The notes under the pieces: generated by a model
Database searches by the model: none
Told to the model about the DNA's origin: nothing
Seen by the model: the letters and a program-made list of their open reading frames with translations, nothing else
Assembly: GCA_038087875.1 (NCBI GenBank)
Contig: CM075998.1
Span: forward strand, 2,294,001 to 2,358,000
Length of the DNA stretch: 64,000 bases
From: Malacoraja senta
Taxonomy: Eukaryota
Reading direction: 5' to 3'
Shown here: positions 38,801 to 61,935 of the stretch, piece after piece
How the letters are laid out: each line of letters begins with the position of its first letter
How positions within the stretch are numbered: the first letter of the stretch is position 1
Made by a program: the position numbers and the translations under genes

Positions 38801-41800
38801 GTTGAAGCTCCTACATAAATAATGGGCACCTGGACTCATAGAATGGTGGTCCTACAAAGTCCCAATGCTGGGGAGAACCAAACCCCTGAAGTGAATGATA
38901 CAACAGACAGAAAGTTTGCATTTGGTAATGCTGCCTTGACTTTGTGCCACAGCATGGTGAGGACAAGGGTTGTGATCTCCAACAGCCAGGAGCAGGTAGA
39001 GAGCAAAACTATGTTATGTTGCAGCTGTATAAAGATTGTTTAGACCGCACTTGGAGTATTTCGTACAGTTCTGTTCATCACACTACAGGACTGGCATAAT
39101 TGTTTGCATAGGCGAGGGGGGACGAAGGGTCGGTTTCTCTGCTATATGTTTCTATATAGCAGACAAACCTCTCCTGGGCAGACAATGGCAAGTTAGATCC
39201 CCGCACAGCTAGACGAAGATTGTCAAGTTTGAGTTTTTTTATCCAATGAGCAACAAAGAGGTAATGCTCGAGTGCGATCTGTTGATGCAGACGCAATGCA
39301 CTGTGGGTGTCTGTCCAGGATCTGAATTGAGGACAAAGGGCTTAATTAGGAAAGGGAAAATAGATTATGAAAGGAAACTGGCAGGGAACATAAAAACTGA
39401 CTGCAAAAGTTTTTATAGATATGTGAAGAGAAAGAGATTAGTTAAAACAAATGTAGGTCCCTTGCAGTCATAAACAGGTGAATTGATCATGGGGAACAAG
39501 GATATGGCGGACCAATTGAATAACTACTTTGGTTCCGTCTTCACTAAGGAAGACATAAATAATCTGCCGGAAATAGCAGGGGGCCGCGGGTCAAAGGAGA
39601 TGGAGGAAATGAGTGAAATCCAGGTTAGTCGGGAAGTGGTGTTGGGTAAATTGAATGGATTAAAGGCCGATAAATCACCAGGGCCAGATAGGCTGTATCC
39701 CAGAGTACTTAAGGAAGTAGCTCCAGAAATAGTGGATGCATTAGTGATAATTTTTCAAAACTCTTTAGATTCTGGAGTAGTTCCTGAGGATTGGAGGGTA
39801 GCAAACGTAACCCCACTTTTTAAGAAGGGAGGGAGAGAGAAAACGGGGAATTACAGACCAGTTAGTCTAACATCGGTAGTGGGGAAACTGCTAGAGTCAG
39901 TTATTAAAGATGGGATAGCAGCACATTTGGAAAGTGGTGAAATCATTGGACAAAGTCAGCATGGATTTACGAAAGGTAAATCGTGTCTGACGAATCTTAT
40001 CGAATTTTTCGAGGATGTAACTAGTAGAGTGGATAGGGGAGAACCAGTGGATGTGTTGTATCTGGACTTTCAGAAGGCTTTCGACAAGGTACCACATAAG
40101 AGATTAGGATACAAACTTAAATCACACGGTATTGGGGGTTCAGTATTGATGTGGATAGAGAACTGGCTGGCAAACAGGAAGCAAAGAGTAGGAGTAAACG
40201 GGTCCTTTTCACAATGGCAGGCAGTGACTAGTGGGGTACCGCAAGGCTCAGTGCTGGGACCCCAGCTATTTACAATTTATATTAATGATCTGGATGAGGG
40301 AATTGAAAGCAACATCTCCAAGTTTGCGGATGACACTAAGCTGGGGGGCAGTGTTAGCTCTGAGGAGGATGCTAGGAGACTGCAAGGTGACTTGGATAGG
40401 CTGGGTGAGTGGGCAAATGTTTGGCAGATGCAGTATAATGTGGATAAATGTGAGGTTATCCACTTTGGTGCCAAAAACGGGAAGGCAGACTATTATCTAA
40501 ATGGTGGCCGATTAGGAAATGGGGAGATGCAGCGAGACCTGGGTGTCATGGTACACCAGTCATTGAAAGTAGGCATGCAGGTGCAGCAAGCAGTGAAGAA
40601 AGCAAATGGTATGTTGGCCTTCATAGCAAGAGGATTTGAGTATAGGAGCAGGGAGGTTCTACTGCAGTTGTACAGGGTCTTGGTGAGACCACACCTGGAG
40701 TATTGCATACAGTTTTGGTCTCCAAATCTGAGGAAGGACATTATAGCCATAGAGGGAGTGCAGAGAAGGTTCACCAGACTGATTCCTGGGATGTCAGGAC
40801 TTTCATATGAAGAAAGACTGGATAGACTTGGCTTATACTCGCTAGAATTTAGGAGATTGAGAGGGGATCTTATAGAAACGTACAAAATTCTTATGGGGTT
40901 GGACAGGCTAGATGCAGGAAGATTGTTCCCGATGTTGGGGAAGTCCAGGACAAGGGGTCACAGCTTAAGGATAAGGGGGAAATCCTTTAAGACCGAGATG
41001 AGGAAAAACTTTTTCACACAGAGAGTGGTGAATCTCTGGAACTCTCTGCCACAGAGGGTAGTTGAGGCCAGTTCATTGGCTATATTTAAGAGGGAGTTAG
41101 ATGTGGCCCTTGTGGCTAAGGGGATCAGGGGATATGGAGAGAAGGCAGGTACAGGATACTGAGTTGGATGATCAGCCATGATCATACTGAATGGCGGTGC
41201 AGGCTCGAAGGGCCGAATGGCCTACTCCTGCACCTATTTTCTATGTTTCTATGTTTCTATGATGTTGCTAACCAGGTTGTCACTTCCTTGCCAAGAACTG
41301 CTTTGTGATTTTTAACTTGTTTTCTTTTGTGTTGCCATGACACTAGGTGCCGAGGTTCTGATGCAGCGGATTGTGGTGAAGTTGTGCATAGGTACCATTG
41401 ACGGTCTGCGTGTGTGCATGCCTCCTTATGACCTTTCTCTTATTCTGATTATAATACAGGTGTAAGGGTCCCACTGGGCTGGATTGCTCTCGCTATCCTT
41501 GGATGGCCCCCATCAAAGCATTACACAATAGGTAACATCCTCTCCCCACCACCCCTTCAAATTAGAGCTGTGACATGCAAGTGCAACATGAGATCTATGT
41601 GGGGAAGGAGGCAGAATCAATCAGGGGGTTTCACCTTTTGTTTTGAACAGTAATTGTGAGCATCCCCTGTCTGGTGGTTTGTGTTGTTGAAAAGGCTGTG
41701 TGCATCCAACAGCGGTGTTACAAGTAATTTGTCGTGGACGGTATTGCAATGCAGGATTGATGGTCTTGGTCTCCTGTTATGCGTGCCAGCCATTATTCAG

Positions 41801-44800: not shown

Positions 44801-47800
44801 ACTGGTCTAAGTGTTGTTCAGGAAGAATAGAAGGAGCTTTACACTGTTTTGGTCGTAATGTGCCAGACCTGATAATGGTTGATGCCTCAACAGCTCCAAT
44901 CTCCATTATTGTGACAATTTAAATATTCCCACCCGACAAGGAAGAATAAACTGACAGATCCAGATCAAACTCAATTTCTTCAGCAAAGTTTTCTGTTCCC
45001 TTCAGTTGGGGAATTCCAACTTGTTGAATTCTCTGTGTACTGTTTGCTGTGTGTCTGAATCCTGATGGGTTTTTCTTCATGCTTCATTTTGTTTTCCCCA
45101 GAGCTTTAAAGAACACATTTAATCAATTTAATTAAAGTCTTTCACTCCACACGTTTCCTGCCTGTGGCAGGGATTGCAGTGATGTGGGAATAACATTTCA
45201 GAGCATTTATATTTGCTCTCTCTCTCTCCCATGCGCGCATTCATCCAATGCACATTATCTTTCCTGTGCGTGCGCTCGCCCCTTCCCCCTCCCCCTCCCT
45301 CTCCCTCTCCCGCATGCCCGCCCTCCCTCTCCCTCTCCCGCATGCCCGCCCTCTCTCTCCCTCCCTTTCTCATACGTGCCTGCACTTCCCCTCTCCCCCT
45401 CTCCCTCACTCTCTAGCTCCCGCTCTCGTGCGTGCCCTCCCTCGTGTTCACTCGTGCAAGCATGCTTTCTTTCAGAATCGCTCCTCTTCAATGACCAATA
45501 GCCAGCTGACAGTCAAAGTAAATTGCTCCCTTTGTGCATTGGAGTGCCATAGACACAGCATTGAACTATGCTGCACAGATCCATTTTGCGAATTCTAATC
45601 TGCACATTTGTTTGGCAGTACAATTGGGGTGACCTTTAAAGCTCTGATGTAGCTAATCCTGTTCGAACCACTGTGTAGATTTTATTATTTTAAGAAGGAA
45701 AGGAATGACCTTGCCATATTGCGTGAGGCAAAACCTGCCTTGACTTGTATTAATTTGAATCTAGACAAATCCCTCAGATTGTTGCAGCAGTTGTTGGAGG
45801 ACTGATGGCTGTGATGCTTGTGGTGCTGCTGGCTGTCGTTTACTGGAGAAGGCAGATCATTCGGAAAAAGAGGGCAATGCGGCGATATCTGGAGACAGAG
45901 GTGAGATGGTCGTCCTAGATGGACAGTGTCAAGAGCGTGAGGTTGCTTTTAGTGACGTTATTGTGAGCTCCACTGAATCTGCTGTGAGGAAGAAACTCGC
46001 AAAAGAGTGTTGACCAATTTTGGGTCTCTGGAGCCTTGATTTTTCGACATGCAACCAAATCCTATCAATAACATCAAACACCATTACCATCAGGATAACA
46101 CATTGCGTTTGTGATTTTGTTTCCTTTCATTAGATGCTTGATCCCCTTGATCCCAGCGCCGACTCACCCAATCAGGTGAACACACGGATTCTGAAGGAGA
46201 CGGAGCTGCGGAAAGTTAAGGTGCTGGGGTCTGGAGTATTCGGAACAGTGTACAAGGTTAGTGGGCATAGGTCACTGCAGGATAATGTTGACCTGCAACT
46301 CTGCCTTTTTGTAAACCAGCATCTGCAGTTTCTTGTTTCTACAATCTGCCTTTTTTGAGTCTTTTAATGTCACAATTCTTGCATACTGCTGTTAGTCCAA
46401 TGTTAATTAAGACTGCTGGATTCTAACCATTACTTGAGGTCTACGGTTGAGGTCTAAGGTTGAGGAACCATGGTTGAGGTCTAAGGTTATCTGATGCTAA
46501 ACAGATCCAAACAAAGTCTCTTTCAAACTGACCTTGTTATTGGGATTGATCATGATGTGCTGTTGCAGTCAATTGGAATGTGTAAGTAGAAAGACTAGTG
46601 GCACCTCTCAGGATGTCCTAAAGTATATGAGCATTTTTAAAGTGTAGACACTATTATGATGCAGGAAATATGGCAAGGAATTTTCTTGCTCAATATTTTT
46701 TTGCATCCACTTGGGAGATCCCCAATATGCCTTATCTGGAAGAGACTGCAACACTCCCTTGACATTGAGCAGTAGTGACAGCCTGGCTTATTGTGCTCAA
46801 GAGTCTGGAGTGGGTCTTAAACCGACCACTGACAGACTCCGAGGACTGAGTACTGCCCATTGAACCTCAGCTAGCGCACAATAGTGCAATGTGACCTCTT
46901 ACACAAAAAGGAGTTCTATTATGAATGACTTTATATAAGACGCAGTGGGGCAAAATAATGTCAGCACATAAATGATGGGAGAATAAAACCAGGTACTCAA
47001 TTATCAATATAAATGTTTCGATTTATCGGGAAGAAATTGTGATACACTGGAAAAAGCTTTGGTGATAGGAAGTGAGGTGAATGAATGAGATCAATGAGAT
47101 GAAGATTGAGAGACTACTCTGTGCTGAGCCGAGCCAGATCCAATGCTCATGTGAGTCCACCTTAGTTATTTTTATTCCTGATGACCTGATAAGATTTCTG
47201 TTCCTAGGGTCTCTGGATCCCTGAGGGTGAGTCCGTAAAGATTCCAGTGGCCATCAAGGTCTTACAGGAGGAGCATTGCTCTGAGACTTCAAGGACTGTG
47301 AATGAGGTAAACCTGCCATTTTTAAAAATAATTCAAAGGATATAGATGTGGTTGTCAATCTTTTATTTCTTGTCTATTTCTAATAGCCCCTGAACTGAGA
47401 GGGAAAGTGTAAATCGCTATGGCCAAGATATTAAGGGGAAATTCTCCTGTTCTTCTTTGAAGAGGGACTTTTCTAATCCACTGAATGGCAGATGGAGCAA
47501 CTCAGATGAGTTTAGCTCTTATTTGGAGTCACATATAGGCCCAGACTAGGCAAGAATGTCTTTGCCTGATGGAATTTGGTGAACCAGATAGGATTCTGGG
47601 ACTGAGAATGATTTGTGTTGATGGTAATGGTATTGACTGAATTTGTCCTTCATTCCTTGCCTTCCCATTGATGGTCTGTGGACTTGAACAACTAGTGGAG
47701 AAAATAGCTCACAAATTATCCCTGTATCTCACCATGGAAAAGGCTTACTGTTGGTTCATGCTGTACTTTGTATTTCATGTTACCTTGTATTTACAGGAGA

Positions 47801-50800
47801 TGTTGATGGTGGGCAGTCTGGATCACCATCATGTCCTGCGACTTCTTGGAATCTGCCCCGGAGCCCCACTCCAGATAGTCACACAGCTCCTGCCACTTGG
47901 CTCTCTCCTTGAGTACCTCCACAAGAACAAGGATAACATCCAGTCCCAAAAGCTTCTCAACTGGTGTGTTCAGATTGCCAAGGTACGTGGGACCTTGTGT
48001 CTATGCTCCTATGCGTCAAGTCAAGTCACTTTTATTTATATAGCACATTTAAAAAACAACTCTCGTTGGCCAAAGTGCTTTACATTGGTGGAGGTACTAA
48101 CGTTATACAACAGTGGTTCATAGATTAAATACATACATCACTATATACATATAGCCCTCGCTCAGAGGACGTCAAGAAAGGCTTGGGAGTAGAGATGAGT
48201 TTTAAGTCTCGACTTAAAGGAGTTGATGGAGGGGGCAGTTCTGATGGGAAGAGGGATGCTGTTCCACAGTCTAGGAGCTGCAACCGCAAAGGCGCGGTCA
48301 CCCCTGAGCTTATGCCTAGACCGCGGGATGTTCAGTAACCCCAAGTCGGCCGATCTGAGGGACCTGGAGGTGGAGTGGTGGGTAAGCAGACTTTTGATGT
48401 AGGTGGGGGCAAGCCCATTAAGGGCTTTGTAGACATAAAGGAGGATCTTGAAATTTATTCGGAACCGCACAGGAACCACTCATGCTTGGCATGAGTCAAA
48501 CATTCTGTATAGCTTTATTGAAGATCAGGTGCTAGTGAGCCCTTGGTGGGGAGAACTTCTCTAAATGGACTCTTGGGATGATACTTATCGTTGCTTATGT
48601 CCGAGTTAAATACATTTACATTGTTACCACAGGGTATGAGATACCTGGAGGAGAAGAAGATGATTCATCGGAACCTGGCTGCCAGAAATGTACTTGTGAA
48701 ATCACCTAGTCATGTTCAGATCACGGACTTTGGCATCACCAACCTCTTGGCATTAGATGAGAAAAAGTATTTCTTTGATGAAGTTAAGGTTTGTCATTTT
48801 TCTTGGTTAAGTTTTCTACTAAGCAGAAAATATTAAGTTACTAATTCCACAAATGTTGGTTTTGATACGTCGGGGAAGTGGGAATTAATTAATTGATAAT
48901 ATTTGAAGAGAAAATTATTTTCATTCCTAACCCCATGCAGACCAAGAAAATCCCAGGTTTGATTCCCCCAGTAACTGCTAGGTCAGTCAGTAATATTGGA
49001 GGCATTACAAATGGTCTCAGTCATTCAGGTTTCTGCTCCCAAAGATAGAGATGCATTCCGAACACAGGCAATGTTTCAGAAGAAGGGAAGTTATTGGAAA
49101 AGGACAATGAATATATTCACGAAATGAGAATCTCTTTTGTGATGACGTTTCAAAAGTACAAAAGAAAAAGATTGTTTCTTTCCCAATCAATCAAATGAAA
49201 GGTCGAAACCCAAAATGTCACCTATCCATGTTTCCCCAGAAGTGCTGCCTGACCCGCTGAGTTACTCCAGCACTTTGTATCTACAAAAGAAAGGGCGAGT
49301 CAGTTCCTTGATCCTGATCTGTTATTCAATAAGATCGTGGCTGATCCCCCATCTCAACTGCACTCTTGTTGTTCTGTCAGAAAAGACCTGAAAAGATAAT
49401 TTTGTTTTATTTTTACAAAAAGCAACTGCAAGACGTACAACACTTGTCCACAAATTTGTACAACTGGTTTTGCGCAAATAGTCATGAGTGAAGGTACACA
49501 AAAATGCTGGAGAAACTCAGCGGGTGCAGCAGCATCTATGGAGCGAAGGAAATAGGCAATGTTTCGGGCCGAACCCCTTCTTCAGACTGATAGGGGGTGG
49601 GGAGAAGAAAGGAAAAAAGGAAAAAAGGCGGAGGAGGAGCCCGAGGGCTGGGGGATGGGAGGAGACAACCAGAGGGCTGATGAAGGGGAGGGGACAGCAA
49701 GGGCCAGCAGAATTTGGAGAATTCAATGTTCATGCCCCCAGGATGTAGACTGCCCAAGCGGAATATGAGGTGCATTTCCTCCAATTTCCGGTGTTGCTCG
49801 CTGTGGCCATGGAGGAGACCCAGGACAGAGAGGTCAGATATGGAATGGGAGGGGGAGTTGAAGTGCTGAGCCACTGGGAGGTCAGGTTGGTTAATGCGGA
49901 CCGAGCGGAGGTGTTCGGCGAAACGATCGCCAAGCCTCCGCTTGGTCTCACCGATGTAGATCAGCTGACATCTAGAGCAGCGGATGCAATAGATGAGGTT
50001 GGAGGAGATGCAGGTGAACCTCTGTCGCACCTGGAACGACTGCTTAGGTCCTTGAATGGAGTCGAGGGGGGAGGTGAAGGGACAAGTGTTGCATCTCTTG
50101 CGGTTGCAAGGGAAAGTACCCGGGGAGGGGGTGGTACGGGAGGGAAGGGAAGAATTGACAAGGGAGTTACGGAGGGAGCGGTCTTTGCGGAAGGCAGACA
50201 TGGGGGGAGATGGGAAGATGTGGTGAGTGGTGGGGTCACGTTGGAGGTGGCGAAACTGAGTGAAGAGCTGCTCGCCCGTTGCCCTTCATCCCTGCTATTA
50301 AACCAATGTCCTGTCAATTTATTCAATTGGGTGTTAAAGATCTCATTTATTAATTAAAGACAGGGTGGGGAATTCCCCCAAAGTTCAACAAACCAGTCAA
50401 TAGGCCATTCATCTCATCAGCAATTGCAGCATCCTGCTGTGCGCAAATAGGCAGCTACCATTACCTACAGAGCAATAGTCACTACTGCACATTAACATTT
50501 ATGTGGAACTGTCTTATTTTTCTGTTCAAGGAGGAACTGCAGATGCTGGAAAATCGAAGGTAGACAAAAGTGCTGGAGAAACTCAGCGGGTGAGGCAGCA
50601 TCTATGGAGCGAAGGAAATAGGCAACGTTTTTGGCCGAAACCCTTCTTCAGACTGATGTAGGGTGGGGGGGGGGGGCAGGAAGAAGAAAGGCAGAGTAGC
50701 CCTTGCTGTCTCCTCCCCTTCTCAGCACTCCCTCAGCCCTCTGGCTCCTCCTCTTCCTTTCTTCTTCCTGCCCCCCCCCCCCACCCTACATCAGTCTGAA

Positions 50801-53800
50801 GAAGGGTTTTGGCCCGAAACGTTGCCTATTTCCTTCGCTCCATAGATGCTGCCTCACCCGCTGAGTTTCTCCAGCACTTTTGTCTTATTTTTCTTTTGCC
50901 CATTTCTAAGATTCTGTGGTTTCATCAGCTTTCCTCTGTTACATATTTAGAAGCTACTTGAAAGGAAAGGCATTGTTATATGGGCCACATTCAGTAGTCT
51001 AGGGAATCTCAAATTGGGAAAGAATATTTTACACAATCTAAGGTTGTCAACAGTTCTGCGCAAAATGAACATCGCTAATGTTCAATTTTCACTCCGGTTA
51101 AACGCAGTGAAGTTAGACAGTGGGAAAAACTGGCTTGCACAAAAATACATTTTATATTGCTGAAACTGGCACCTTACTAGAACGGGCATAAATAAAGCCA
51201 CAGGTTCTGCCGTCACATTAAAGGGACAGGAATGGAAATGCAGCTGCATGCATTTGAGCTGAATTTCAGAGGCGCAAACTATAACCACATCGCTGACCCA
51301 AATCTGCAGCTACTTCTAAATCGTCAACATTGTGTCACTCCTTGTGAATGAAGTCAGAGTTGAATTGGTTGAGCAAGCTGGATCATGTAATAACCATTGA
51401 AAACAGAAGCAACAGCCTCTGTCAAACTGATGCAAGATCTGAAATGTTTCAATGTTATTGAGGGATTCATTGCTTGCAATGATCAGGTTTGGCACATATG
51501 CTTTAAACCTTGATTTTGTTTTAAGGAAATGTATTTGCGCGCAACATCACCATATTACATAAATAAGACAAGGCTACATGCCTTGGTAAATTGGTTTTAG
51601 ATGTGATATTTTTAAAAGTTCCCATTCAGGGGAGCTTTACATGCTGAAAGCATATTGGCAGAAATTTAGAGTTGCTTCTCATTCAAGGCTCCCTTGATTT
51701 TCTGCCCATTCATTTTATTGGGCACAAAATCACCGTGGACTGTGAATTAGGCAATAACTAAATCAATGTCTGCACCAGGGGCCTAGTGCCATAAAGGCAA
51801 ACATTTGTCTTCATTGTTGTAAAAAAAAATTGCCCCACCCTTTTGTTGCCTTGTTGTTGAGTCTGTCTGTCTGTTGCCTGCTGTAGATGCCCATTAAATG
51901 GATGGCACTAGAGAGCATTCACTTTAGAAGATACACCCACCAAAGTGATGTGTGGAGTTATGGTGAGTTATATACCTATGGAAGCATTTTTTTATTTATT
52001 AAAAGTGCAGTACAGCATTATTTCATATTTAAACAAAATTGATGCAAAAATACTTCATTTCTGCAGTTAAGCAACATTTCTGGTGGGATAGGGGGAGGAG
52101 ATGTTGGAAATGTTGAAGAGGCAGTATAGACCTTAATGATGTCCCGAATAATTTATTCGTTTTCTGAGGGAGCAGAGAGAATATGACAGAAATGTGTCTT
52201 ACTTCAACTTTGTTAAATTGGCCTCAGAAAAAGGACTTGCTATCAAACTGTTGTTGGCCGATTGGAGTCAAAGGATCTGTGCAGTGTGGAAGGGATGATT
52301 GGGCGAGAGGGATCAGTGTTAGGACTGTTTTGCCATTTTCAAATAACATGTTGATATTTTAGTTCAGTCAGGAGATGCCCGCAAAACAACAGGGTGGTTT
52401 ATAAGGTCAAAGAAATGGGCACAACCAGGGAACATTGTTTGGGAAGGCAACATTTGGCTGGTGCTATATTATGTAATTTAGTATAAACTCCTCCACTTGT
52501 TGATACAACATAATTAGATGCATTACAAGACTAATGGGAAAATATTGACACAAATGAATCGGGAGAGGGATCTGGGATTTGTTATGAAAATCTGACATTA
52601 GAGATGTGTTCATGGGTTACCACACGTATGTCTTGGAGAAAGTATGTGGGAGAAGAGGGAAGTATAGACTGGAAATTGCTGATGGCTTAAACCAAACATC
52701 TGTGATTTTGGATTATTACTGAGTTAATATGTCATGTCGAAAGGTGTCCATTTGCTGTCTGCTTCTCGAAAACTGTGATTGGACGTTATTCAGCAGAACA
52801 TGTATTGTTATTCGGATTCCTGTGCAAAATGTTGTGCTCTTTGGAAATAGACACAAATATTCTTGTGTTACCATTAGAATCATTATCACGAAAATCATTG
52901 GGATCTTAAAAAGAAGCTTTAATTGTGTGGTACAATTCCTCCCCACCCCAGTGTCAACTGCAACACATTTGTTTGCTTTGCACTGTAAAGAAAACATGTC
53001 GACCAGATAAAGTCTGGCAAAGCCATCGTGGACCAGGAAGTGTAAGGGACAATGAATTTGTTGCTAACCCATAATGCAGCAAGTAGAACTAGTGCTTCAG
53101 ATGCAGATTTAAGGTAAATTCCAATCTCTGCCATTTCTTAAAGCTGTAATCTGTACTGAAGAGTAACTGAAGAAAAAACACCACCTTCAATACTGTCCTG
53201 CAATTTCCTCATTTGGAAACCTATTCCCATTCTTTACTGGCTTTTGTCAATATGCTAAAGAATTCTAAATAAACATAAGCACAAAACCAGCGTTGTTTAT
53301 TTCTTTCAAACATTGTGCATTTACAGACACCTAGTTCAGCACTGAAGTGCAGTACGGTGGGAGTGCTGCACTTACACTTGTGCTGTCTTTCAGATGATCT
53401 GTTAAACCAAGATGTTATCTCCTTCGCAAGTGGATGCAAATAATCCAATGCCTCTATTTTGAAGAAGGCCGAGGGAGTTCCAGGCCAGCATTGTTCCTTA
53501 ACATCTGAAAAAACTCCAGCAGATTACTTATCATTATCGTATTGCAATTTGTGGGAGTTTGCTGTGCGCAAATTGTCTGCTGTATTAAGCAACATTATAG
53601 TACCAACAATACAAAATGACTTTTTTTGTCCGCTAAACACTTTGGGATAACCTGAGGTGATAATAAGCGCTACAGAAATGCAAGCCTCTTCTTCTGGTCA
53701 GTGTGAATGTAATTTAACTCTGCACGTGTTTCTGACGTACCTGAAATCATGAGTTCTTCAAATCGATTCTCCTGTTGAATTGTATGATTTCATGAACAAT

Positions 53801-56800
53801 CTGTTGGGAGGCCAGAGATCCTGTGTTGTACACCGTGAAGGCATTACGCCTGCTTCTGTCGGGGTGGGGTGACTGTTGTTGTGGCTGACTAGTCCAGCCT
53901 GCTTACTGTCGATGAACTGGATATGGCACCAGATTGAGACCTTGCCTGTTACCTCTTCTGGGGTCTGTGCAGCTGTGTTTTCTGAAGATGGTGATAAGAA
54001 TGTAGGGTGTAATGAGGATTGGCTTGGTCAGGTATTCCAGCTGTGGCTGTCAGCTCTTCCCTCTAACTGCAATCATCACCTTCAAGCATGACTTTCCATG
54101 CAATACACTTCTGGGATATTGCTACAGTGTGGTATCTCCGAGACCATCACTTAGTGGAATGTTGCAGGACATGGACACTATAATGGAAGACATAAACCTT
54201 TGTTTGTTGACCACTACTCCCACAAAGATCCCCATCCTTGGCGATGAGTTAAGCTGCCTCTTGATTGGGTGCATTCTCTCCTACTGGTGGTTCATGAGTA
54301 TCAAGAATTCACAGCACAGTGATGTAGGAACATGTACATATGACCATTAAGGATATGTGAAAAGTTTATCCTGTGTATGTTCCTTGTACAACTCCAACTA
54401 TAAAATGCTGTATATCTCCTGAGTGTTCCCATTTAAGATTAAAAAAATGTGTCCTTGTTTTATTATGGAGTGACATTATTCCAGCGAATCGTATCCAACT
54501 GTTTATCACCTTCCAGCAGTCAATGAAGAATGTTGTTTGCAGGTGTGTTTGCATGCACTTGTGCACATGAGATAGCACTCATTGTGTGGAGCACATTCCT
54601 GGAACTCTGACATCCTCTTGTCGGTCTTTCCCCACCTCTTGTGGGCTCAGGATGCTGAGTTGCACTGACAGTATCTCCTATGTCTGTGATGCCAGGAGGA
54701 AAGGGATAAGGTGGCGAGGAATGGTCATGAGTCCCATATCGTGTTTCACGCCTTGAACCTTACCAACTGGGCTTCTTGGCATCCAATCATTAAAACTGGT
54801 TATTCTTCCTATATGGCCATCAGTTGCTTAACATTTACAGCCACTGTGGCCTCTCCAGCACAACTGAGTTATGAACTTTACTGCACCTTGTGCATAACTG
54901 GCTGGCTTCTAAGAAAATCTTTTCATACTCCACTAAAATTAGGAGTCTTGAATAAAGCAGTTCCTCAAAAACCCAAGTAATTCTCAATGAAACCTCAATT
55001 GTACCAACAGCAATTTTCAGCTTGTATGTTCGGCGTTGCGCGCATTGCCATTGAAGTGAACTTAAACTAATTTGTCTGTGGCCATAGGAGGTACCAGATT
55101 TTGAGTTTTAAAATATTGTGTGCTCTTTGCAGGTGTCACCATATGGGAGCTGATGACATTTGGCAGTAAACCGTACGAGGGCATTGCTGTTCGTGAGGTC
55201 CCCGGTCTCCTGGAGAAAGGGGAACGTTTGCCACAGCCTCAGATCTGTACCATTGATGTCTACATGGTGATGGTGAAATGTAAGTATGTGACTAAAGACA
55301 AGGGTTTTACTTGCAGAATTTTAGGTGGATTAAGGGATGGTCTGATTGAAGTTTCCAAGATATTAAAGATTTAAAGAGAACTGACTGGGTAGAGTGACCA
55401 CTTCCATTTGTTTGAGAGACTGTCATTAGAAATAAGTGGGCAATAGACTAATAGTTACAGCTTGGCCTTCTGAGGATAATCAGGAAACATTTCTTCAGGC
55501 AACAGACAGTTGAGATTTGGACCTCTCTTGCATAAATAACAATTGATATTAGGTCAGTTGTCAATCATAAATCTAAGACTGAATTTTTTTTTTTTGTTAA
55601 CCAAAGGTATTGTGAGATACGGAGCTAGATTACATGGCAGTTTTGATATCATTGATTAGTGAAACAGCCGCAAGGGAGCAAATTGACTCATCTTGTTTCT
55701 CTATCCCTAACTTTGAAAGCACAGATTCTAGGATTTTTTGTCAAATCAGAATAGACGGTTACTAAATATCGGAGTATTGAATAATAATGCCTTGTATCAT
55801 AGATTGTGACATATCACTTGAAGCTGCATAGAATATATGACAACTTGGGAAACAGCATCAACTTGTTGTCTTCTATGCAGTCTGTAATTGATGAGTAAAA
55901 TGTCCCAAAGAACTTCACAGAAGCTTTATCAAAAATAATTTTGCATCAAACCATAAGAAAATAACACGCACTAAAAAGCGTGGTGAAACAAGTGAATTTA
56001 AAAGTATCTTTGAAGAAGAAAGAGAAACAGGGGTTTAAAGAAGGACTTCCAGAATTTTTCCCAATGATGGAGTGATTGAAATGTTTGAGTTATTTGCTCA
56101 TCAACATTGCTATCCACATCCAAATAGCAGCAACAAGATCCAAACATGAAAGCATATTGATCAGATTATCGGGTGATTCAGTGAGATCTGTTGTAGTTTA
56201 TGTGAGCTGTAGTAATGGAGGTCAAAAAGATTTACTGTGGTAACATGTATTTTGTCTGTGTATAATTATGAAAGCCTTCAATATGTTGTCAAAGATAATG
56301 GGTGCTAACAGGATTGCATGGTATGGATACATCACGGGCCATCTATCCCCATGTGAATGTCCTTAATAGAAAAACGACATGGATTTTAAAAGGCCTTGTG
56401 TAAAATTCCATGCTCTTTCTATTTCCCCCCCTCCCCTTGGATCCTTGGGTTTCAGATCTTGAGACTTTTGACTAAAGATTCATAAAGATTACTGACTTTC
56501 TGAATGAGTTACATGCGAGAATCTGGGTTCCATGATTTGCTTCCCGTCTACCCTCTTCCCTCAATGTTGGGGTGCAACAAAACGTAATTCTCTTCATTTT
56601 TCTAAAACAGGTTGGATGATCGACGAAGACAGTCGCCCAACATTTAAAGAACTTGGTGCAGAATTTTCTCGAATGGCCCGGGATCCAGCTCGATATTTGG
56701 TTATTGAGGTTTGTTTCTGTGATGTCTCTTGAATATGTGGAAATAAGTTTGAGAACAGTCTGTCAGTTGACATGAATATTAAAATTGATGAGCTCCAAAA

Positions 56801-59800
56801 CTAAAATTAGTTCAGAGAATTACATTAAACAAACAGCACGGGGTGGGGGAACACCATTTGACCCAACCCGTCTATTTATACACCACTGGACATTTTCCTC
56901 CTGTAATTCCTGCGAGCATTGTCTTCTAATCTCTGTTTTGTTCATCTCATTTCTCTGTTCAATGCCATTTACCACAATCACTCAATGATAGCAAGCGCCA
57001 CATTCTCACCATTCTCTATTGGATATCCTGCTTTGAATTACAGTAGTGATTTGGGTAGATTTGCCACGGACTGCCTTTGCATTATACCACAACTAAGATG
57101 GAACATTTTATCAGGTTTGCCTATATTCTGATGATTTAACAGTATCATTACCTACTTGAGGATGTCCCTGTTTTGTTGATAGGCTGCCAGCTGTATCGCT
57201 AACCATTCTGTATCTTTCCTTAGGGTGATGACAGGGCTAACAATACATACGTTAGTGACCAAAGGACTCTGCATGAATATGAGGAAGACCTTGTGGATGG
57301 TGATGATCTGGATGAAGATTTGATGGAGACCACACTGGATAACCCACCATCTGGTGTAGTACGGCTGAGGATTGAATCAACCAGGGTATGAAATGGGCGA
57401 ATATTAATCTAGGGTTTTGTGGCAAGAGCAGATTATTTGGGGTGACTTAGTTCCCTTCCGTCTTTCCTAGATATTGATTGCACAAAGCAATCAGTTTGTG
57501 TGATGCGCAGACGTCACTGGCAAGACCAAGCTTTTATTGCCCATTCTCAATATCCTTTGAATCAACCAGCTAGCTGAGAGTGCAGAGTTGTAAGCAAATT
57601 TCTCCTGACATGTTGAGAGAATTAGCTGCTTTCCTCATGGTTTAGTGGGGTAAATGATCAATTTGTTATCGACCAGGAAAAAACGAAATTTGACTTTCCA
57701 GTTGGATGATCTTAGCTGGGATAGTAGTAATGGCTTGGCGCTCCTAAGCAAGGGAGAGAAAAATATCAGCCAGGGTTACGCTTTTGGTATGATCTGAGTA
57801 CCTCTGCTGATAACTGTGTGTGAATGTGGAGTAACTCAGTTCAGCTGCTCAGTTTCCCCATGGTCTCTGGTGAAGGGACATGTTAATAATCTCAGCTAGT
57901 ATGTAAAGAACTGGTTATTTGAATAAGGACCTCAGCTATAGCATCGCAAGAATAATGGAGAGATCAGGGAGAAGACTACTTGCAAATTGTTTGTTGCTTA
58001 TTCCAAAACACAATTGGCTGTGAACCTGGTCCCTTAAACTACACCTTGGATTAGTTACGTACAGCCCCCTAACACCCACTCTCTCCCATCTTTCTTCTCC
58101 CCCTGCCCCCCCTTCAATCAGTCTGAAGAAGTCCCAACTTGAAATTTCACCTATCCATGTTCTTCAGAGTTGCTGCCTGACCTATTTTTTCCTCACACAT
58201 TAACCTGACAGAATTTACTTCACAATTTGTTTGCTAATATCTCAAATGGTCTCCTGATCGACTGGAGGCAATTCGTGTTAAGTGCCCTTCCAAATGTAAT
58301 GCTTGTGTCTCTTTTGCAGAGCAACAGTTTACCAGCTGCGTATATGCCAATGAATGGGATTGGTCAAGATGGCTCTCGGCAGGTGGGTACAAGATGAAGT
58401 CTATTTGGAGACACTAATATCAGCAGCAAAAGTGTCATGTTTTATTTAGATAGTACATAGAAACAATTAAAGATAGTCTCAAAAATAATTGGAATATTCT
58501 TAGTCTTGGTATTTTAAAGGGCAAGTTTGGATAATCTTTGCCCCGATTCTTTGAATGTTTAGTGCAGCTATTGCATTTGTTCACTAATATTAAAAAATAT
58601 ATATTGTAAGCAGCACGCACCATTTAAAAGTCTAACTTTTATGACTGAATTATTTTTTCTGTACCTCGAGTACGGAATACCAGAACAGACCCATTCAATT
58701 GTGGGTATTTGCTGGATCACAGATTGGCATCTATGCAGCTTCGATACACTGCACCCTATACCAACATGCTATTCTGCAGTGTCTCAACAGCAACAAAAAA
58801 AAGGCAGCATTCGAGTTTTGTTGCAGTGTTTCTTGCTTAAAACTGTGCATCGGGAATTTGGTCATCGCAGACAGACTTCCTGTTCAGTCACCTATCCAAT
58901 TCTTCTTTTGGTTCAGTTAGATAAATAATTGAGCCAGAATTGGGGACTCCACCCAGATACTTCATACACTTCTCCTTATACATTCACTTCTGCAATAGGA
59001 ATACAGAAAGAGATCTTAATATGCATAAAGTGGAACTTTAGTGCTGGTAATAACTGTAATTATGGAGATGTGCAAGCAGACTGTAGTACGGTTTAGGGAG
59101 AACTGTAGGCAAGAAAGAACCGAAAGAAAATAAGACCATTGTGGAGCATTGGTGAGAAAGAAAATCTAGTGACATGCTACATTATTTTAAAGTAAGGTCT
59201 AAACCAGGGGTCGGCAACCTGCGGCCCGTAACCCAAAATCATCTGGCCCGCAGGTGGATTTTTTTTCCCAGTAACCATCCGGCCTGCCGAGTGCCCGCCC
59301 CGAATGTGTCCGAGCTCCCGCCCCGAGTGTGGCTGAGTGCTCCGGCTGTACCGCATCCTGCGCAAAGCTGCTGGCACGGCCGCGCACCTTCTGTGAACAC
59401 GTTTAAGAACTGCAGATGCTGGAAAAATCTAAGGTAGACAAAAATGCTGGAGAAACTCAGCGGGTGAGACATGCAAGGATTGCATGAGGCTGCCTCACCC
59501 GCTGAGTTTCCTCAGCATTTTTGTCTACCTTCTGTGAACACGTGATTTGATGCCTGCCATCCGGGGCGGGATGGGGGCGGGACCCATGTGTACACGTGAT
59601 AGATGTGGCCCGCCATCCGCTCAGACATGCGTCCTGGCCCCTATGCAGAACAAGGTTGCCGACCCCTGGTCTAAACTGATCTCCTCAGTCAGGGTCCTCC
59701 TCTAGCATTGAGGCCCTGAAGGAGATCATGAAAAACCCAATAAACATGAAAATTTGACCATGTGCTCATGGTGTAATTATTTACCTCTGACAAAAAGTCC

Positions 59801-61935
59801 TTTAACCATACCACATAAGAGGAATGTGTGCATTACTAGCTACAGTGACATATAACAAAGTGCCCTGTTCATCTATTAGACTGGGATGAAGAATGGAGAC
59901 CTGGGATCAAAGCGCTCTCTGAGGACACGGAATGAATCAACGACGCGGACTATCTCGGAGTCATCGGAGGGTCGAGGTACAGCATCCTCAATTGATCTGT
60001 ATGAAGAGATATCTTTGAATGGAACACTCCAGCTCCGTGGCCACCGCTCGCGAGACAGCAGTGCACGTTTCTCCAATGGCACAAACATGATGATTTCCCC
60101 ATCTGATGAAGCAGAGGTGGACATTAATGGCTATGTGATGCCAGAACAAAAAAACACTACCGCTGGTAAGAAACCTATTCACCCTTTGAACCTTCTGCTT
60201 GGAGTTTGATTACAAGAATAAAAATGAAATGCAGTTGTACAGGAATTTAGAAAATATGAAACTTCTAAAAGAAGTAACTAAATTGCCCAATTAAATCTGG
60301 TATAATTTGTAATTTCTCATGTCTAAATTACAATCTGAACAGATAACCTATTTGGACAGTCTAATTCAGCAGCAAACAAATGAACTGCTGGAGGAAATCA
60401 GTGGGTTAGGTAACATCTGTGAGGGAATTCACTGTTGGCTTGGCTTGAAAAAGTCGAGGGCATTTAGTCAGTACAAAAGGGCGAGAGGAAAGGTGGGGCA
60501 AGAGCTGACAAGCGATAGTGCTCACCGATGTAGAGGTGGCCACACGGAGAGCACTGGATGCATGAATGCAATAGATGAGGTTGGAGGAAGTGTGTGTGAA
60601 TCTGTGTCACCTGGTTGGGCTATTTAGGTCTCTGGATGGTGGTGAGGGAGGAAGTATAGAAACCAGGGAGTCACAGAGAGAGCGGTTGCTGTGGAAAGTA
60701 TAAAGGTTGGAGATGGGAAGATGTGACTGGTGGTGGGATCAGGATGCAGCTGGCAGAAATATTGAAGAATGCTGTGCTGGATTTGGAAGCTGGCAGTGTG
60801 AAAGGTAAGGACCAAGAGGACTCAGGGAAGATGGTGCGTGCAGAAAATGGAGGAGATGTCGGTGAGGGCTCCATCAAGCACATGCGAGGGAACCCCCATT
60901 TCCTGATTTTCTGGAATGGAAAGCTTCCTCTGGAGAACAGATGCCGAAAAGACAGAGCGACTGGAAGAAAGGGATAGTGTCCTGACCAGGGACAGGGTGG
61001 GAGGAGGTGTAGTCTTGGTAGCTATGGAGTCAGTGAATTTGTGGGAAACTGTGAGCAATAAATATATTCTGGTACTTAAGTAGTGACTGAGTGCTCTTTG
61101 GATAAGTGTCTATCAGATCAGAAATTAAATCAAAGCCTTGTATGTTTATTCTGATGAGTGCTGAAGATCTGATGCTGCTATTAGAAGAGCAAGACTAATT
61201 TATATCTTGGGCAACCATACCAAGAACAGGTTAACTGGCTATTTATTTAATTTCTTAATTGTGGGATTATGCAGTGCACAATTGATGTTGTATTTGCCTG
61301 CAATAGTTGCGCTGCAGAAGGAATTCATTGGCTGTAAAGTGCCTGCAGAGTGGGATAAAATATTAATACAAGCACAAACTTGTTCTATCATTTAATCGTA
61401 AATCACACTCTCTTGCCAGTAAGTATCCTTGATACAATAATTGTACGGCATTGTAGTTCCACCTAATGGTTCAAGGGGTAAATGCAATCATGTCTGATCG
61501 AGTAGAGACCTAAAGATGTGTGTGTGAGTGTGTGAAACTCTTCAAATACATGTCAGACATGCATCTGAAGCAAAGAAGATAAAAGATTCACAGCATTTAG
61601 TTATTTTCCAGTGAATTACAAGTCTTTCTGCTTTGCTTACAGACGACCTGAAACCTGCCAACGATGCAGATCCCTTAATCAGTAAAGTCGGTGATGTGAA
61701 TACCACCCAGTCACCTGAGAATCGGAAGGAATTGGACTCAAAACCAAGTGATAACCAGGAATACGAGTACATGAACAAACGAGCCTACCTCAATGGCTGT
61801 GTGAGCATTGTGCAGAACCCAGAATACCTGGATGACAGTACGGTGTTTATTACTGAGGCTGACATCCATGCCTTTGATAATCCAGACTACTGGCACAATA
61901 GTCTGCCAGCAAAGTCAGAAATAAAAAGGACATAG
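8684..61935 (+). CDS. ERBB3: Receptor tyrosine-protein kinase ErbB-3-like gene, spliced CDS exons 2-28 (5'-partial; exon 1 not in window)
   Basis: 27 exon positions with canonical AG/GT and consistent phases, total 3695 nt with the 72-nt JM exon. Domain order is L1-CR1-L2-CR2-TM-kinase-tail. ERBB3 hallmarks: [33 protein letters not shown] and C-terminal AFDNPDYWH...RT*. Some segments are ERBB4-like. Confidence 0.88.
11367..11468 (+). mobile_element. short Penelope-like 3'-end copy, sense to the host gene, with hammerhead-like core
   Basis: cagtCTGAAGAagggtctcgacccGAAAcgtc; flanked by atgatttatg repeats. Confidence 0.85.
11540..12135. promoter_or_regulatory. CpG-island-like segment in intron 2 with TATAAATA
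   Basis: Dense CpG over 11540-11770 against CpG-poor flanks; tataaata at about 11800. Confidence 0.45.
12721..13404 (+). mobile_element. Rex1/Babar-like LINE 3' fragment
   Basis: [34 protein letters not shown]; AATAAA plus (AATTG)n tail. Confidence 0.85.
17590..17998 (+). repeat. diverged ~66-bp tandem array (~6 units)
   Basis: Anchor tttgatgggacagtgtagagg recurs at about 17658, 17726, 17788, 17855, 17921 and 17987. Confidence 0.8.
18255..18441 (+). CDS. ERBB3: exon 3 ([29 protein letters not shown]...GFKHLT)
   Basis: acag|TCA ... ACAG|gtatg, 187 nt. Confidence 0.95.
19130..19560. repeat. C-rich low-complexity tract
   Basis: Almost G-free ccca/ctcc-rich sequence. Confidence 0.8.
19617..20077. 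mobile_element. candidate non-autonomous DNA transposon (hAT-like), imperfect TIRs
   Basis: Ends cgggcacggaaatc / gatttccgcccatg; flanks taaggca on both sides; subterminal aaacatggggg repeats. Confidence 0.5.
21180..21314 (+). CDS. ERBB3: exon 4 ([46 protein letters not shown])
   Basis: tgcag|AG ... GGCT|gtgagt, 135 nt. Confidence 0.95.
21992..22057 (+). CDS. ERBB3: exon 5 ([21 protein letters not shown])
   Basis: tttcag|GC ... AACT|gtaag, 66 nt. Confidence 0.95.
22735..23140 (+). mobile_element. Penelope-like 3' fragment (end of GIY-YIG plus tail)
   Basis: [28 protein letters not shown] reading; hammerhead-like tail at about 23040. Confidence 0.85.
24314..24435 (+). CDS. ERBB3: exon 6 ([40 protein letters not shown])
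   Basis: aacag|TG ... TTT|gtaag, 122 nt. Confidence 0.95.
24825..25320 (+). mobile_element. old CR1-type LINE 3' fragment
   Basis: Decayed [10 protein letters not shown]...[10 protein letters not shown]...RTREH reading. Confidence 0.65.
25559..25700 (+). CDS. ERBB3: exon 7 ([47 protein letters not shown]), dimerization arm
   Basis: cacag|GCA ... CCTG|gtgagt, 142 nt. Confidence 0.95.
26871..26984 (+). CDS. ERBB3: exon 8 ([37 protein letters not shown])
   Basis: tgcag|CG ... AAAG|gtgag, 114 nt. Confidence 0.95.
27195..28545 (+). mobile_element. Rex1/Babar-like LINE, 5'-truncated, frameshifted RT
   Basis: [43 protein letters not shown]; AATAAA at 28528. Confidence 0.9.
30984..31110 (+). CDS. 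ERBB3: exon 9 ([42 protein letters not shown])
   Basis: cacag|CA ... AAGG|gtaag, 127 nt. Confidence 0.95.
32428..32501 (+). CDS. ERBB3: exon 10 ([24 protein letters not shown])
   Basis: tttag|G ... ACAG|gtatg, 74 nt. Confidence 0.95.
33200..33290 (+). CDS. ERBB3: exon 11 ([30 protein letters not shown])
   Basis: tccag|GT ... ACAT|gtaag, 91 nt. Confidence 0.95.
33828..34036 (+). CDS. ERBB3: exon 12 ([30 protein letters not shown]...KQGRLC)
   Basis: tgtag|C ... TGCA|gtgagt, 209 nt. Confidence 0.93.
35316..35448 (+). CDS. ERBB3: exon 13 ([44 protein letters not shown])
   Basis: cacag|GG ... AAGG|gtaag, 133 nt. Confidence 0.95.
36834..36924 (+). CDS. ERBB3: exon 14 ([30 protein letters not shown])
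   Basis: cacag|A ... ACG|gtaag, 91 nt. Confidence 0.95.
37812..37966 (+). CDS. ERBB3: exon 15 ([52 protein letters not shown])
   Basis: cttag|GGA ... CAGGG|gtagg, 155 nt. Confidence 0.95.
38149..38452 (-). mobile_element. tRNA-derived V-SINE (HE1-like)
   Basis: Reverse strand shows A box TGGTGCAGCTGG, B box GGTTCCATCCC, V-domain gttctccctgtgaccgtgtgggttttctccgg and LINE-like tail. Confidence 0.85.
39330..41261 (+). mobile_element. CR1-clade LINE, 5'-truncated, uninterrupted 559-aa RT ORF (39483-41162)
   Basis: [37 protein letters not shown]; (TTTCTATG)n tail. Confidence 0.95.
41347..41391 (+). CDS. ERBB3: alternative juxtamembrane exon, JM-b-like ([15 protein letters not shown])
   Basis: Polypyrimidine tract then cactag|G ... 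ATAG|gtacc; 45 nt, phase 2-2; C-x-G-S-x4-C (ending DC) pattern as in ERBB4 JM-b CIGSSIEDCIGLMDR. Confidence 0.78.
41460..41531 (+). CDS. ERBB3: alternative juxtamembrane exon 16, JM-a-like ([24 protein letters not shown])
   Basis: tacag|G ... ATAG|gtaac; 72 nt, phase 2-2; aligns with ERBB4 JM-a [25 protein letters not shown] including YPW. Confidence 0.9.
45270..45460. repeat. CT-rich imperfect tandem repeat (cgcatgcccgccctccctctccctctcc)
   Basis: Visible unit duplication. Confidence 0.7.
45765..45900 (+). CDS. ERBB3: exon 17, transmembrane helix and basic juxtamembrane ([45 protein letters not shown])
   Basis: ctag|A ... GAG|gtgag, 136 nt; hydrophobic stretch followed by basic cluster. Confidence 0.93.
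46134..46256 (+). CDS. ERBB3: exon 18 ([41 protein letters not shown]), Gly-rich loop
   Basis: attag|ATG ... AAG|gttag, 123 nt. Confidence 0.95.
47208..47306 (+). CDS. ERBB3: exon 19 ([33 protein letters not shown]), VAIK lysine
   Basis: cctag|GGT ... GAG|gtaaa, 99 nt. Confidence 0.95.
47797..47982 (+). CDS. ERBB3: exon 20 ([40 protein letters not shown]...WCVQIAK)
   Basis: tacag|GAG ... AAG|gtacg, 186 nt. Confidence 0.95.
48015..48472 (-). mobile_element. L2-clade LINE 3' fragment filling most of intron 20
   Basis: ORF 48162-48479 [16 protein letters not shown]...[15 protein letters not shown]...FKSRLKTHL; (tcaag)n tail. Confidence 0.9.
48633..48788 (+). CDS. ERBB3: exon 21 ([52 protein letters not shown])
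   Basis: cacag|GGT ... AAG|gtttg, 156 nt; HRN at 48666-48674; DFG present. Confidence 0.95.
49490..50259 (-). mobile_element. Penelope-like 3' fragment, near-identical to 5684-6450
   Basis: GIY-YIG ORF 49536-50201; 9-bp direct flank tgagtgaag at 49485-49493 and 50257-50265. Confidence 0.92.
50524..50885. mobile_element. inverted pair of Penelope-like 3' ends
   Basis: Arms of about 130 bp at ~50563-50691 and ~50756-50885; 14-bp direct flank tgtcttatttttct. Confidence 0.88.
51887..51962 (+). CDS. ERBB3: exon 22 ([25 protein letters not shown])
   Basis: tgtag|ATG ... TATG|gtgag, 76 nt. Confidence 0.95.
53315..53690 (+). mobile_element. DeuSINE (SacSINE1/AmnSINE-like) remnant
   Basis: gtgcagtac.gtgggagtgctgcac..tgctgtctttcagatga..gttaaacc; gtgggagtttgctgtgcgcaaattg; L2-like tail. 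Related minus-strand copies near 13540-13940, 30400-30760 and 46600-46880. Confidence 0.65.
55133..55279 (+). CDS. ERBB3: exon 23 ([50 protein letters not shown])
   Basis: tgcag|GT ... AAAT|gtaag, 147 nt. Confidence 0.95.
56611..56708 (+). CDS. ERBB3: exon 24 ([32 protein letters not shown])
   Basis: aacag|GT ... GAG|gtttg, 98 nt. Confidence 0.95.
57224..57385 (+). CDS. ERBB3: exon 25 ([54 protein letters not shown])
   Basis: cttag|GGT ... AGG|gtatg, 162 nt; acidic; ends resemble ERBB4 GDDR...RIDSNR. Confidence 0.88.
58320..58382 (+). CDS. ERBB3: exon 26 ([21 protein letters not shown]), YxxM motif
   Basis: tgcag|AGC ... CAG|gtggg, 63 nt; YMPMN as in ERBB3. Confidence 0.88.
59205..59668. 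mobile_element. hAT (Charlie-like) MITE with nested Penelope-derived hairpin
   Basis: Perfect 16-bp TIR caggggtcggcaacct / aggttgccgacccctg; 8-bp TSD gtctaaac at 59197-59204 and 59669-59676. Confidence 0.92.
59880..60165 (+). CDS. ERBB3: exon 27 (TGMKNGDLG...ISESSEGRG...DLYEEISL...[15 protein letters not shown])
   Basis: attag|ACT ... GCTG|gtaag, 286 nt; SESSEG and NGYVMP motifs. Confidence 0.88.
60365..61050 (-). mobile_element. older degenerate Penelope-like fragment
   Basis: [21 protein letters not shown] and related readings homologous to the younger copies. Confidence 0.75.
61643..61935 (+). CDS. ERBB3: exon 28 coding part (...[14 protein letters not shown]...NPEYLDD...[21 protein letters not shown])
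   Basis: ttacag|AC, stop TAG at 61933-61935; C-terminus matches ERBB3 AFDNPDYWH...RT. Confidence 0.92.

Follow-up and report, generated by a model that had tools for sequence, protein, structure and literature searches.

The 64,000-nucleotide stretch analyzed here, from the skate Malacoraja senta (assembly GCA_038087875.1, contig CM075998.1, positions 2,294,001 to 2,358,000 of the forward strand; hereafter the window, with coordinates counted from its first letter), carries a gene which, as judged from its sequence, is the skate orthologue of ERBB3 (HER3), a neuregulin-type co-receptor with a pseudokinase intracellular domain. We found that this gene has lost the catalytic aspartate, with HRN in place of HRD, and bears a glutamate at the helix alphaC position, where human-type ERBB3 has a histidine. 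The explanation that best accounts for all observations, to which we assign a probability of about 0.7, is that skate ERBB3 is a HER3-like pseudokinase, that ERBB3 lost its catalytic aspartate before it lost the acidic alphaC residue, and that the skate glutamate arose by reversal from aspartate. Gene models for this receptor are already public; new are the residue pattern and its reading.

HER3 is the textbook example of a receptor pseudokinase and a drug target in oncology. In their earlier work, Stein and Staros described the divergence of the ErbB3 C-helix and asked when ErbB3 lost its kinase activity (PMC1618406). At the level of single residues, our data point to an answer: the catalytic aspartate would have been gone by the last common ancestor of jawed vertebrates, and the alphaC acid would have been lost later, once, in bony vertebrates. 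A text search of the accessible literature returned no paper combining ERBB3, cartilaginous fishes and pseudokinase.

Hallmark residues of the skate kinase domain

Three consecutive plus-strand exons, all bounded by AG/GT and supported by translation, RNA contigs and alignment, contain the decisive codons. The exon at 47208..47306 covers strand beta3 with the VAIK lysine (AAG, 47256-58), reaches halfway through the alphaC region and ends in ...RTVNE, the last glutamate of which (GAG, 47304-06) aligns with EGFR Asp761. The following exon, 47797..47982, opens with the glutamate at the alphaC position (GAG, 47797-99; translation and alignment) and continues with MLMVGSLDH, the hinge and helix D/E. 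The exon at 48633..48788 encodes the catalytic loop HRNLAARN, the DFG motif and the activation loop; translation places the asparagine that replaces the catalytic aspartate at 48672-74 (AAC), the DFG aspartate at 48726-28 (GAC) and the activation-loop tyrosine of DEKKY(FF) at 48768-70 (TAT). Translation and RNA contigs thus bear out every one of these elements as located in the initial annotation of the window. The beta3 lysine, the DFG aspartate, the Mg-binding asparagine and the C-lobe MVKCW segment are all kept, and the activation-loop tyrosine is unremarkable, as most non-mammalian ERBB3 proteins read DDKKY here.

Splicing was checked in three related species, with contigs of four sequencing runs labelled as RNA. 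The contigs join 46256 to 47208, 47306 to 47797, 47982 to 48633 and 48788 to 51887, exactly at the AG/GT borders, and show no variant of the GAG (Glu) or AAC (Asn) codons in any of the three species. The window ERBB3 is transcribed and spliced as modelled.

Assignment of the glutamate to the alphaC position, proposed in the initial annotation, was upheld by three lines of evidence. The residue lies at +17 from the VAIK lysine, and both this spacing and the intron position match the alphaC glutamate of EGFR, ERBB2 and ERBB4. In two independent MAFFT alignments, it shares a column with the glutamate of 11-12 active ERBB rows and with the histidine of human-type ERBB3. The equivalent exon of Callorhinchus, the cartilaginous fish in which the aspartate codon was read, begins at the same position, with GAC (Asp). 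Public proteins of Amblyraja and Rhinoraja have the glutamate together with HRN as well.

Human HER3 lacks both the alphaC glutamate (His740) and the catalytic aspartate (Asn815) (PMC4718504). If a pseudokinase is defined by replacement of at least one of the VAIK lysine, the HRD aspartate and the DFG aspartate, the skate domain belongs to this class by virtue of its HRN. The alphaC histidine typical of HER3 is absent; its position is occupied by glutamate in skates and by aspartate in other cartilaginous fishes.

Distribution of the two residues across vertebrates

Cartilaginous-fish proteins were retrieved with residues 195-312 of coelacanth ERBB3, a stretch unusually close to the skate sequence. 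HRN is present in all sampled species, including 18/18 alignment rows. At the alphaC position, 17 non-skate species have aspartate: Callorhinchus, ten sharks from both superorders, and six rays (Narcine, Pristis, Hemitrygon, Hypanus and two Mobula). Glutamate occurs only in the skates Amblyraja, Leucoraja, Rhinoraja and the window species, so that the 18 cartilaginous rows of the alignment divide into 14 with aspartate and four with glutamate. The preceding residue is glutamate in every cartilaginous ERBB3. The alphaC pair is consequently Asp-Glu in the active kinases EGFR, ERBB2 and ERBB4, all of which have HRD, but Glu-Asp in cartilaginous ERBB3 and Glu-Glu in skates. Only three of 284 kinase residues are skate-specific substitutions, and the alphaC change is among them.

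The survey of bony vertebrates comprised about 150 ERBB3 clusters, from coelacanth, lungfish, frogs, salamanders, caecilians, turtles, squamates, a crocodilian, birds, monotreme and placental mammals, sturgeon, gar, and both erbb3a and erbb3b of teleosts. Neither glutamate nor aspartate was found at the alphaC position in any of them, which settles the concern, voiced in the initial annotation, that the glutamate might be common in bony-vertebrate ERBB3 (0 of ~150 clusters). Histidine prevails nearly everywhere, with glutamine and proline as exceptions, and nearly all of these proteins have HRN. The contrast drawn at the outset between human-type ERBB3, with histidine and asparagine, and the Asp-Glu pair of EGFR and ERBB4 was confirmed by the alignments and by the published description of HER3 (PMC4718504), and extends to ERBB2.

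The glutamine was seen in salamanders, caecilians and the lungfish Protopterus (P0434/P0159) and the proline in Latimeria (P0011); P0187, P0199, P0206 and P0226 also belong to this non-histidine group. Muroid rodent ERBB3 (P0276, P0277, P0454, P0467) has HRDLALRN and the alphaC histidine, and squirrel and primates have HRN. The sea turtles Lepidochelys, Caretta and Eretmochelys (P0189, P0440, P0441, P0443) have HRDLAARN, again with the histidine; Natator and ten other turtles have HRN. In muroid rodents and carettine sea turtles, the catalytic aspartate has been re-gained with the histidine kept, a mirror image of the skate. These are natural counterparts, on a histidine background, of the N>D change that the initial annotation suggests might rescue activity. 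The combination of HRD with an acidic alphaC residue was present in no ERBB3 surveyed. Alligator ERBB3 (P0236) has the catalytic loop HRG, and an 'erbB-3-like' protein of the sloth Choloepus (P0292), with HRY and with ANFG in place of ADFG, may be a decaying copy. As far as the accessible part of a 2009 catalogue of kinase homologues without the catalytic aspartate goes, human ERBB3 is its sole EGFR-class entry.

Order of the losses and origin of the skate glutamate

Residue histories were derived from change counts (parsimony) on a maximum-likelihood gene tree of 60 rows. In this tree, the sequences of cartilaginous fishes group together (100/100), with bony-vertebrate ERBB3 (100/100) as their sister group, and the window row is nested in the skates (100/99), adjoining Amblyraja and Leucoraja. 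The HRD residue changes five times: on the ERBB3 stem, in two reversals, once to glycine and in one misaligned fragment. The state acidic versus non-acidic at the alphaC position changes once on the whole tree, and the state Asp versus Glu changes once within cartilaginous fishes. As HRN occurs in both major lineages of jawed vertebrates, their common ancestor already had it; the change from the catalytic aspartate to asparagine would thus have taken place on the ERBB3 stem, before the split of cartilaginous and bony vertebrates. The acidic alphaC residue, by contrast, appears to have been lost once and later, on the bony-vertebrate stem. The proposal that loss of the catalytic aspartate came first therefore holds, since HRN is common to both clades and the single loss of the acid is confined to bony vertebrates.

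At the codon level, we propose that the alphaC glutamate (GAR) changed to aspartate (GAY), probably on the ERBB3 stem or on the cartilaginous stem, that aspartate was replaced by histidine (CAY) once, in bony vertebrates, and that it returned to glutamate, most probably by one base change (GAC to GAG), once, on the skate stem. GAR, GAY and CAY, in that order, each differ from the next by one base. Counted in bases under the genetic code, the overall cost is three changes if the jawed-vertebrate ERBB3 ancestor had aspartate and four if it had glutamate, because the step from glutamate to histidine requires two bases. Skates lie within or next to aspartate-bearing cartilaginous fishes, the gene-tree order being (Narcine, (skates, (Pristis, stingrays))) with 96/85 support, and their glutamate is for this reason very probably a reversal and not a relic. 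The term evolutionary intermediate, used in the initial annotation, accordingly fits the class-wide Asp/Glu state of cartilaginous fishes; it does not fit the skate glutamate as a surviving ancestral residue, given aspartate in the 17 non-skate species.

Could skates instead have kept the ancestral glutamate, with aspartate arising independently in chimaeras, sharks and the other rays? All three paralogues, EGFR, ERBB2 and ERBB4, have glutamate, an exchange with aspartate takes a single third-position change, and the Glu-Glu of skates looks like a midpoint between the Asp-Glu of active kinases and the Glu-Asp of other cartilaginous fishes. Skates might also be the sister group of all other batoids, a placement that the approximately unbiased (AU) test does not reject (p 0.10). 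Nevertheless, this scenario demands parallel changes from glutamate to aspartate, three on the conventional tree or four on the gene tree, compared with two changes for a reversal, in addition to the costlier base changes of a glutamate ancestor. The invariance of aspartate in 14 non-skate alignment rows and 17 non-skate species moreover indicates a site that changes rarely. We consider a retained glutamate unlikely.

Degree of decay and predicted function

As a yardstick of decay, we used the 173 kinase-domain positions that do not vary among 12 active ERBB1/2/4 rows. Of these positions, 81.5-83.8% are kept in cartilaginous ERBB3 and 72-76% in bony ERBB3. The description of the domain as half-degenerated is fair for the whole cartilaginous class and does not single out the skate. 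Departures common to both ERBB3 clades include Ala to Val in the glycine loop (G-loop), ICL to ICP, HRD to HRN, HVK to HVQ, and Cys to Ser after the hinge, and because they are common to both, the pseudokinase signature is in large part ancestral.

The tail of the window protein has 273 amino acids and two YxxM motifs (YMPM and YEYM). Cartilaginous-fish ERBB3 tails measure 265-273 amino acids, with the same two YxxM motifs and one NPEY; five or six YxxM are present in the ERBB3 tails of gibbon, coelacanth and gar. Proteins P0432, P0270, P0281, P0011 and P0214 are among those compared. The PI3K-docking array seems to have been expanded in bony vertebrates.

Human HER3 binds ATP with a dissociation constant of ~1 uM, occurs in alphaC-out structures and autophosphorylates in trans very weakly (PMC4718504). 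By homology, the skate ERBB3 domain would bind ATP as well. The receptor would most likely bind ligand and serve mainly as a phosphotyrosine scaffold, with the tail phosphorylated in trans, and, through its kinase-like domain, as the allosteric activator of ERBB2, EGFR or ERBB4; without a catalytic base its own phosphotransfer would be weak at most. The acidic alphaC residue would allow the Lys-acid salt bridge of the alphaC-in state, which probably persists for the sake of nucleotide binding or a stable conformation and not for full catalysis. That an acid has been conserved at this position for so long suggests that the Lys-acid contact still matters in cartilaginous fishes.

A more far-reaching possibility is that cartilaginous ERBB3 is a kinase whose weak activity is put to biological use, or a 'receiver' in asymmetric dimers, and that the activator-only scaffold emerged later and in bony vertebrates only. 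The acidic alphaC residue kept across chimaera, sharks and rays, the larger share of active-kinase invariant positions (~83% compared with ~75% in bony ERBB3), the closer match, by score, of the skate domain to human ERBB4 than to human ERBB3, and the modest YxxM count (2 versus 5-6), which makes the scaffold role look less elaborated, would all agree with such a function, and human HER3 is weakly active even without the catalytic base (PMC4718504). If this were true, cartilaginous fishes would represent a functional intermediate in pseudokinase evolution, its activity owed to the Lys-acid bridge and an ERBB4-like core; skates, back at glutamate, would possess the most kinase-like ERBB3 known, and bony vertebrates would have completed the conversion with the alphaC histidine and additional PI3K docking sites. 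However, HRN is universal in the cartilaginous clade, the G-loop valine, the ICP near alphaC-beta4 and the HVQ are common to bony ERBB3 and mark the pseudokinase signature as largely ancestral, and aspartate, being shorter than glutamate, may fail to form the bridge. A genuine kinase or receiver function thus appears distinctly unlikely to us.

Several points weigh against our preferred interpretation of a HER3-like pseudokinase with a secondarily restored glutamate. The polarity of the change in skates is decided by parsimony, with two changes against three or four, and the narrower margin, 2 vs 3, applies if skates are the sister of all other batoids, as the AU test permits. Residues as similar as glutamate and aspartate toggle by third-base transversions, so that parallel changes to aspartate are conceivable, and the sample comprised one holocephalan and no cyclostome. 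Strict conservation of aspartate for >400 million years might reflect more function than 'HER3-like' implies. Finally, an AlphaFold2 model of the skate kinase domain, with a mean predicted local distance difference test (pLDDT) score of 71 and ~60 in the N-lobe, is too weak to place the helix, and its Foldseek matches to ERBB4 and EGFR, at a root-mean-square deviation of 4-6 A, give no basis for a statement on alphaC-in or alphaC-out.

Identity of the window gene

ERBB3 extends over 8683-61935 (+) of the window. Searches with tblastn, using skate, coelacanth, teleost and turtle ERBB3 proteins as queries, and a spliced model yielded exons 2-28, i.e. 27 coding exons encoding 1231 amino acids; exon 1, which encodes the signal peptide, gave no match within the 64-kb window. 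The model has GT-AG borders, and 1210/1231 of its residues are identical to Leucoraja erinacea ERBB3 (P0424), including all residues of the kinase domain when compared with the public protein of that species (273/273). Its exons align along the full length of skate, coelacanth and teleost ERBB3 and encode the receptor architecture of L domain, furin-like domain, L domain, domain IV, transmembrane segment, kinase domain and tail; the Pfam families are those of the protein cluster holding the skate proteins.

The claim that the gene is ERBB3 was substantiated by four concordant findings, namely the tree, synteny in relatives, HRN and the tail motif. The ERBB4 clade (100/100) falls outside the grouping of cartilaginous and bony ERBB3, and the ERBB3-type tail end with the NPDYWH motif is present. 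Of the RPS26 - ERBB3 - PA2G4 neighbourhood expected of the orthologue group, RPS26, which adjoins ERBB3 at the human locus, lies directly upstream of the ERBB3 orthologue in Callorhinchus and Pristis, the window's own flanks being outside the 64 kb. In NCBI records, most ERBB3 proteins of cartilaginous fishes are called 'erbB-4-like' or 'erbB-4', and this naming fits the higher score of the skate kinase domain against the solved structure of human ERBB4 (477 bits) than against that of human ERBB3 (452 bits).

These names and the slightly greater closeness to human ERBB4 might suggest an active ERBB4-like paralogue, or the glutamate might stem from faulty sequencing or assembly or be a private allele, but the paralogue is ruled out by the tree, the RPS26 synteny in relatives, HRN and the tail motif, and the error or allele by GAG in RNA contigs of three species and Glu in three other skates, which leaves this explanation with a practically negligible probability.

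Comparison with known ERBB kinases

Human ERBB3/HER3 (PDB 3KEX, 3LMG, 4RIW) shares with the skate protein the exon structure, HRN, the VAIK lysine, DFG, the G-loop GSGVFG, the ICP after beta4 and the HVQ before DFG. It differs in its alphaC His740, opposed to glutamate in the skate and aspartate in other cartilaginous fishes, in its activation loop (DDKQLLY, compared with DEKKYFF) and in its tail, since that of the skate is ~100 residues shorter and has two instead of six YxxM. The skate domain also keeps ~15 more of the 173 active-ERBB invariant positions. The ERBB4 kinase (PDB 3BCE, 2R4B) is the best-scoring solved relative, with the alphaC glutamate, ITDFG and KSP.HV shared. Unlike skate ERBB3, ERBB4, whose sequences form the sister paralogue group in the tree, has HRD, Asp-Glu instead of Glu-Glu in helix alphaC, and a tail ending in ...PPPPYRQRNTVV (rows named erbB-4). 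The muroid rodent and carettine sea turtle proteins resemble skate ERBB3 in being 'half-restored', with one of the two hallmark residues canonical, but have the opposite combination of HRD with an alphaC histidine, and the rodents additionally changed LAARN to LALRN.

Taken together, these proteins constitute a natural allelic series on similar backgrounds, with glutamate in skates, aspartate in sharks, rays and chimaeras, histidine, glutamine or proline in bony vertebrates, and HRD in rodents and sea turtles. This series lets the part of each hallmark residue in ATP binding, residual catalysis and allostery be tested.

Remaining exons and intronic elements

The other intracellular exons, likewise on the plus strand, complete the receptor. 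The exon at 46134..46256, read from its translation and joined to the next exon by RNA contigs, encodes the intracellular juxtamembrane segment and the glycine loop. Downstream of the activation loop, the exon at 51887..51962 (translation, RNA contigs and spliced model) contains the P+1 loop, and the exon at 55133..55279 (translation and spliced model) the kinase C-lobe with the MVKCW segment. This C-lobe segment includes the known activator-interface valine of ERBB kinases, the column of which is invariant in alignment A2. The last kinase-domain exon lies at 56611..56708 (translation and spliced model), followed in the spliced model by four tail exons at 57224-57385, 58320-58382, 59880-60165 and 61643-61935, the last of which ends in a stop codon. 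Further upstream, tblastn identified two alternative extracellular juxtamembrane mini-exons on the plus strand (41333-41392 and 41460-41531), which correspond to isoforms X1 and X2 of the Leucoraja protein.

Intronic repeats at 46297-46493, 47990-48480 and 49050-51020 reach RNA-contig word depths from thousands to >100,000 in the four runs, and the flanking ERBB3 exons 3-30; these repeats are abundant transcribed SINE (short interspersed nuclear element) and Penelope-like families. The intron preceding the juxtamembrane mini-exons contains an open reverse-transcriptase reading frame of 559 amino acids (39483-41162, +). Two near-identical reading frames with a GIY-YIG-like end, of the Penelope type, are located in other introns, with coordinates listed as 5890-6456 (-), 49536-50201 (-) and 6585-7442 (-).

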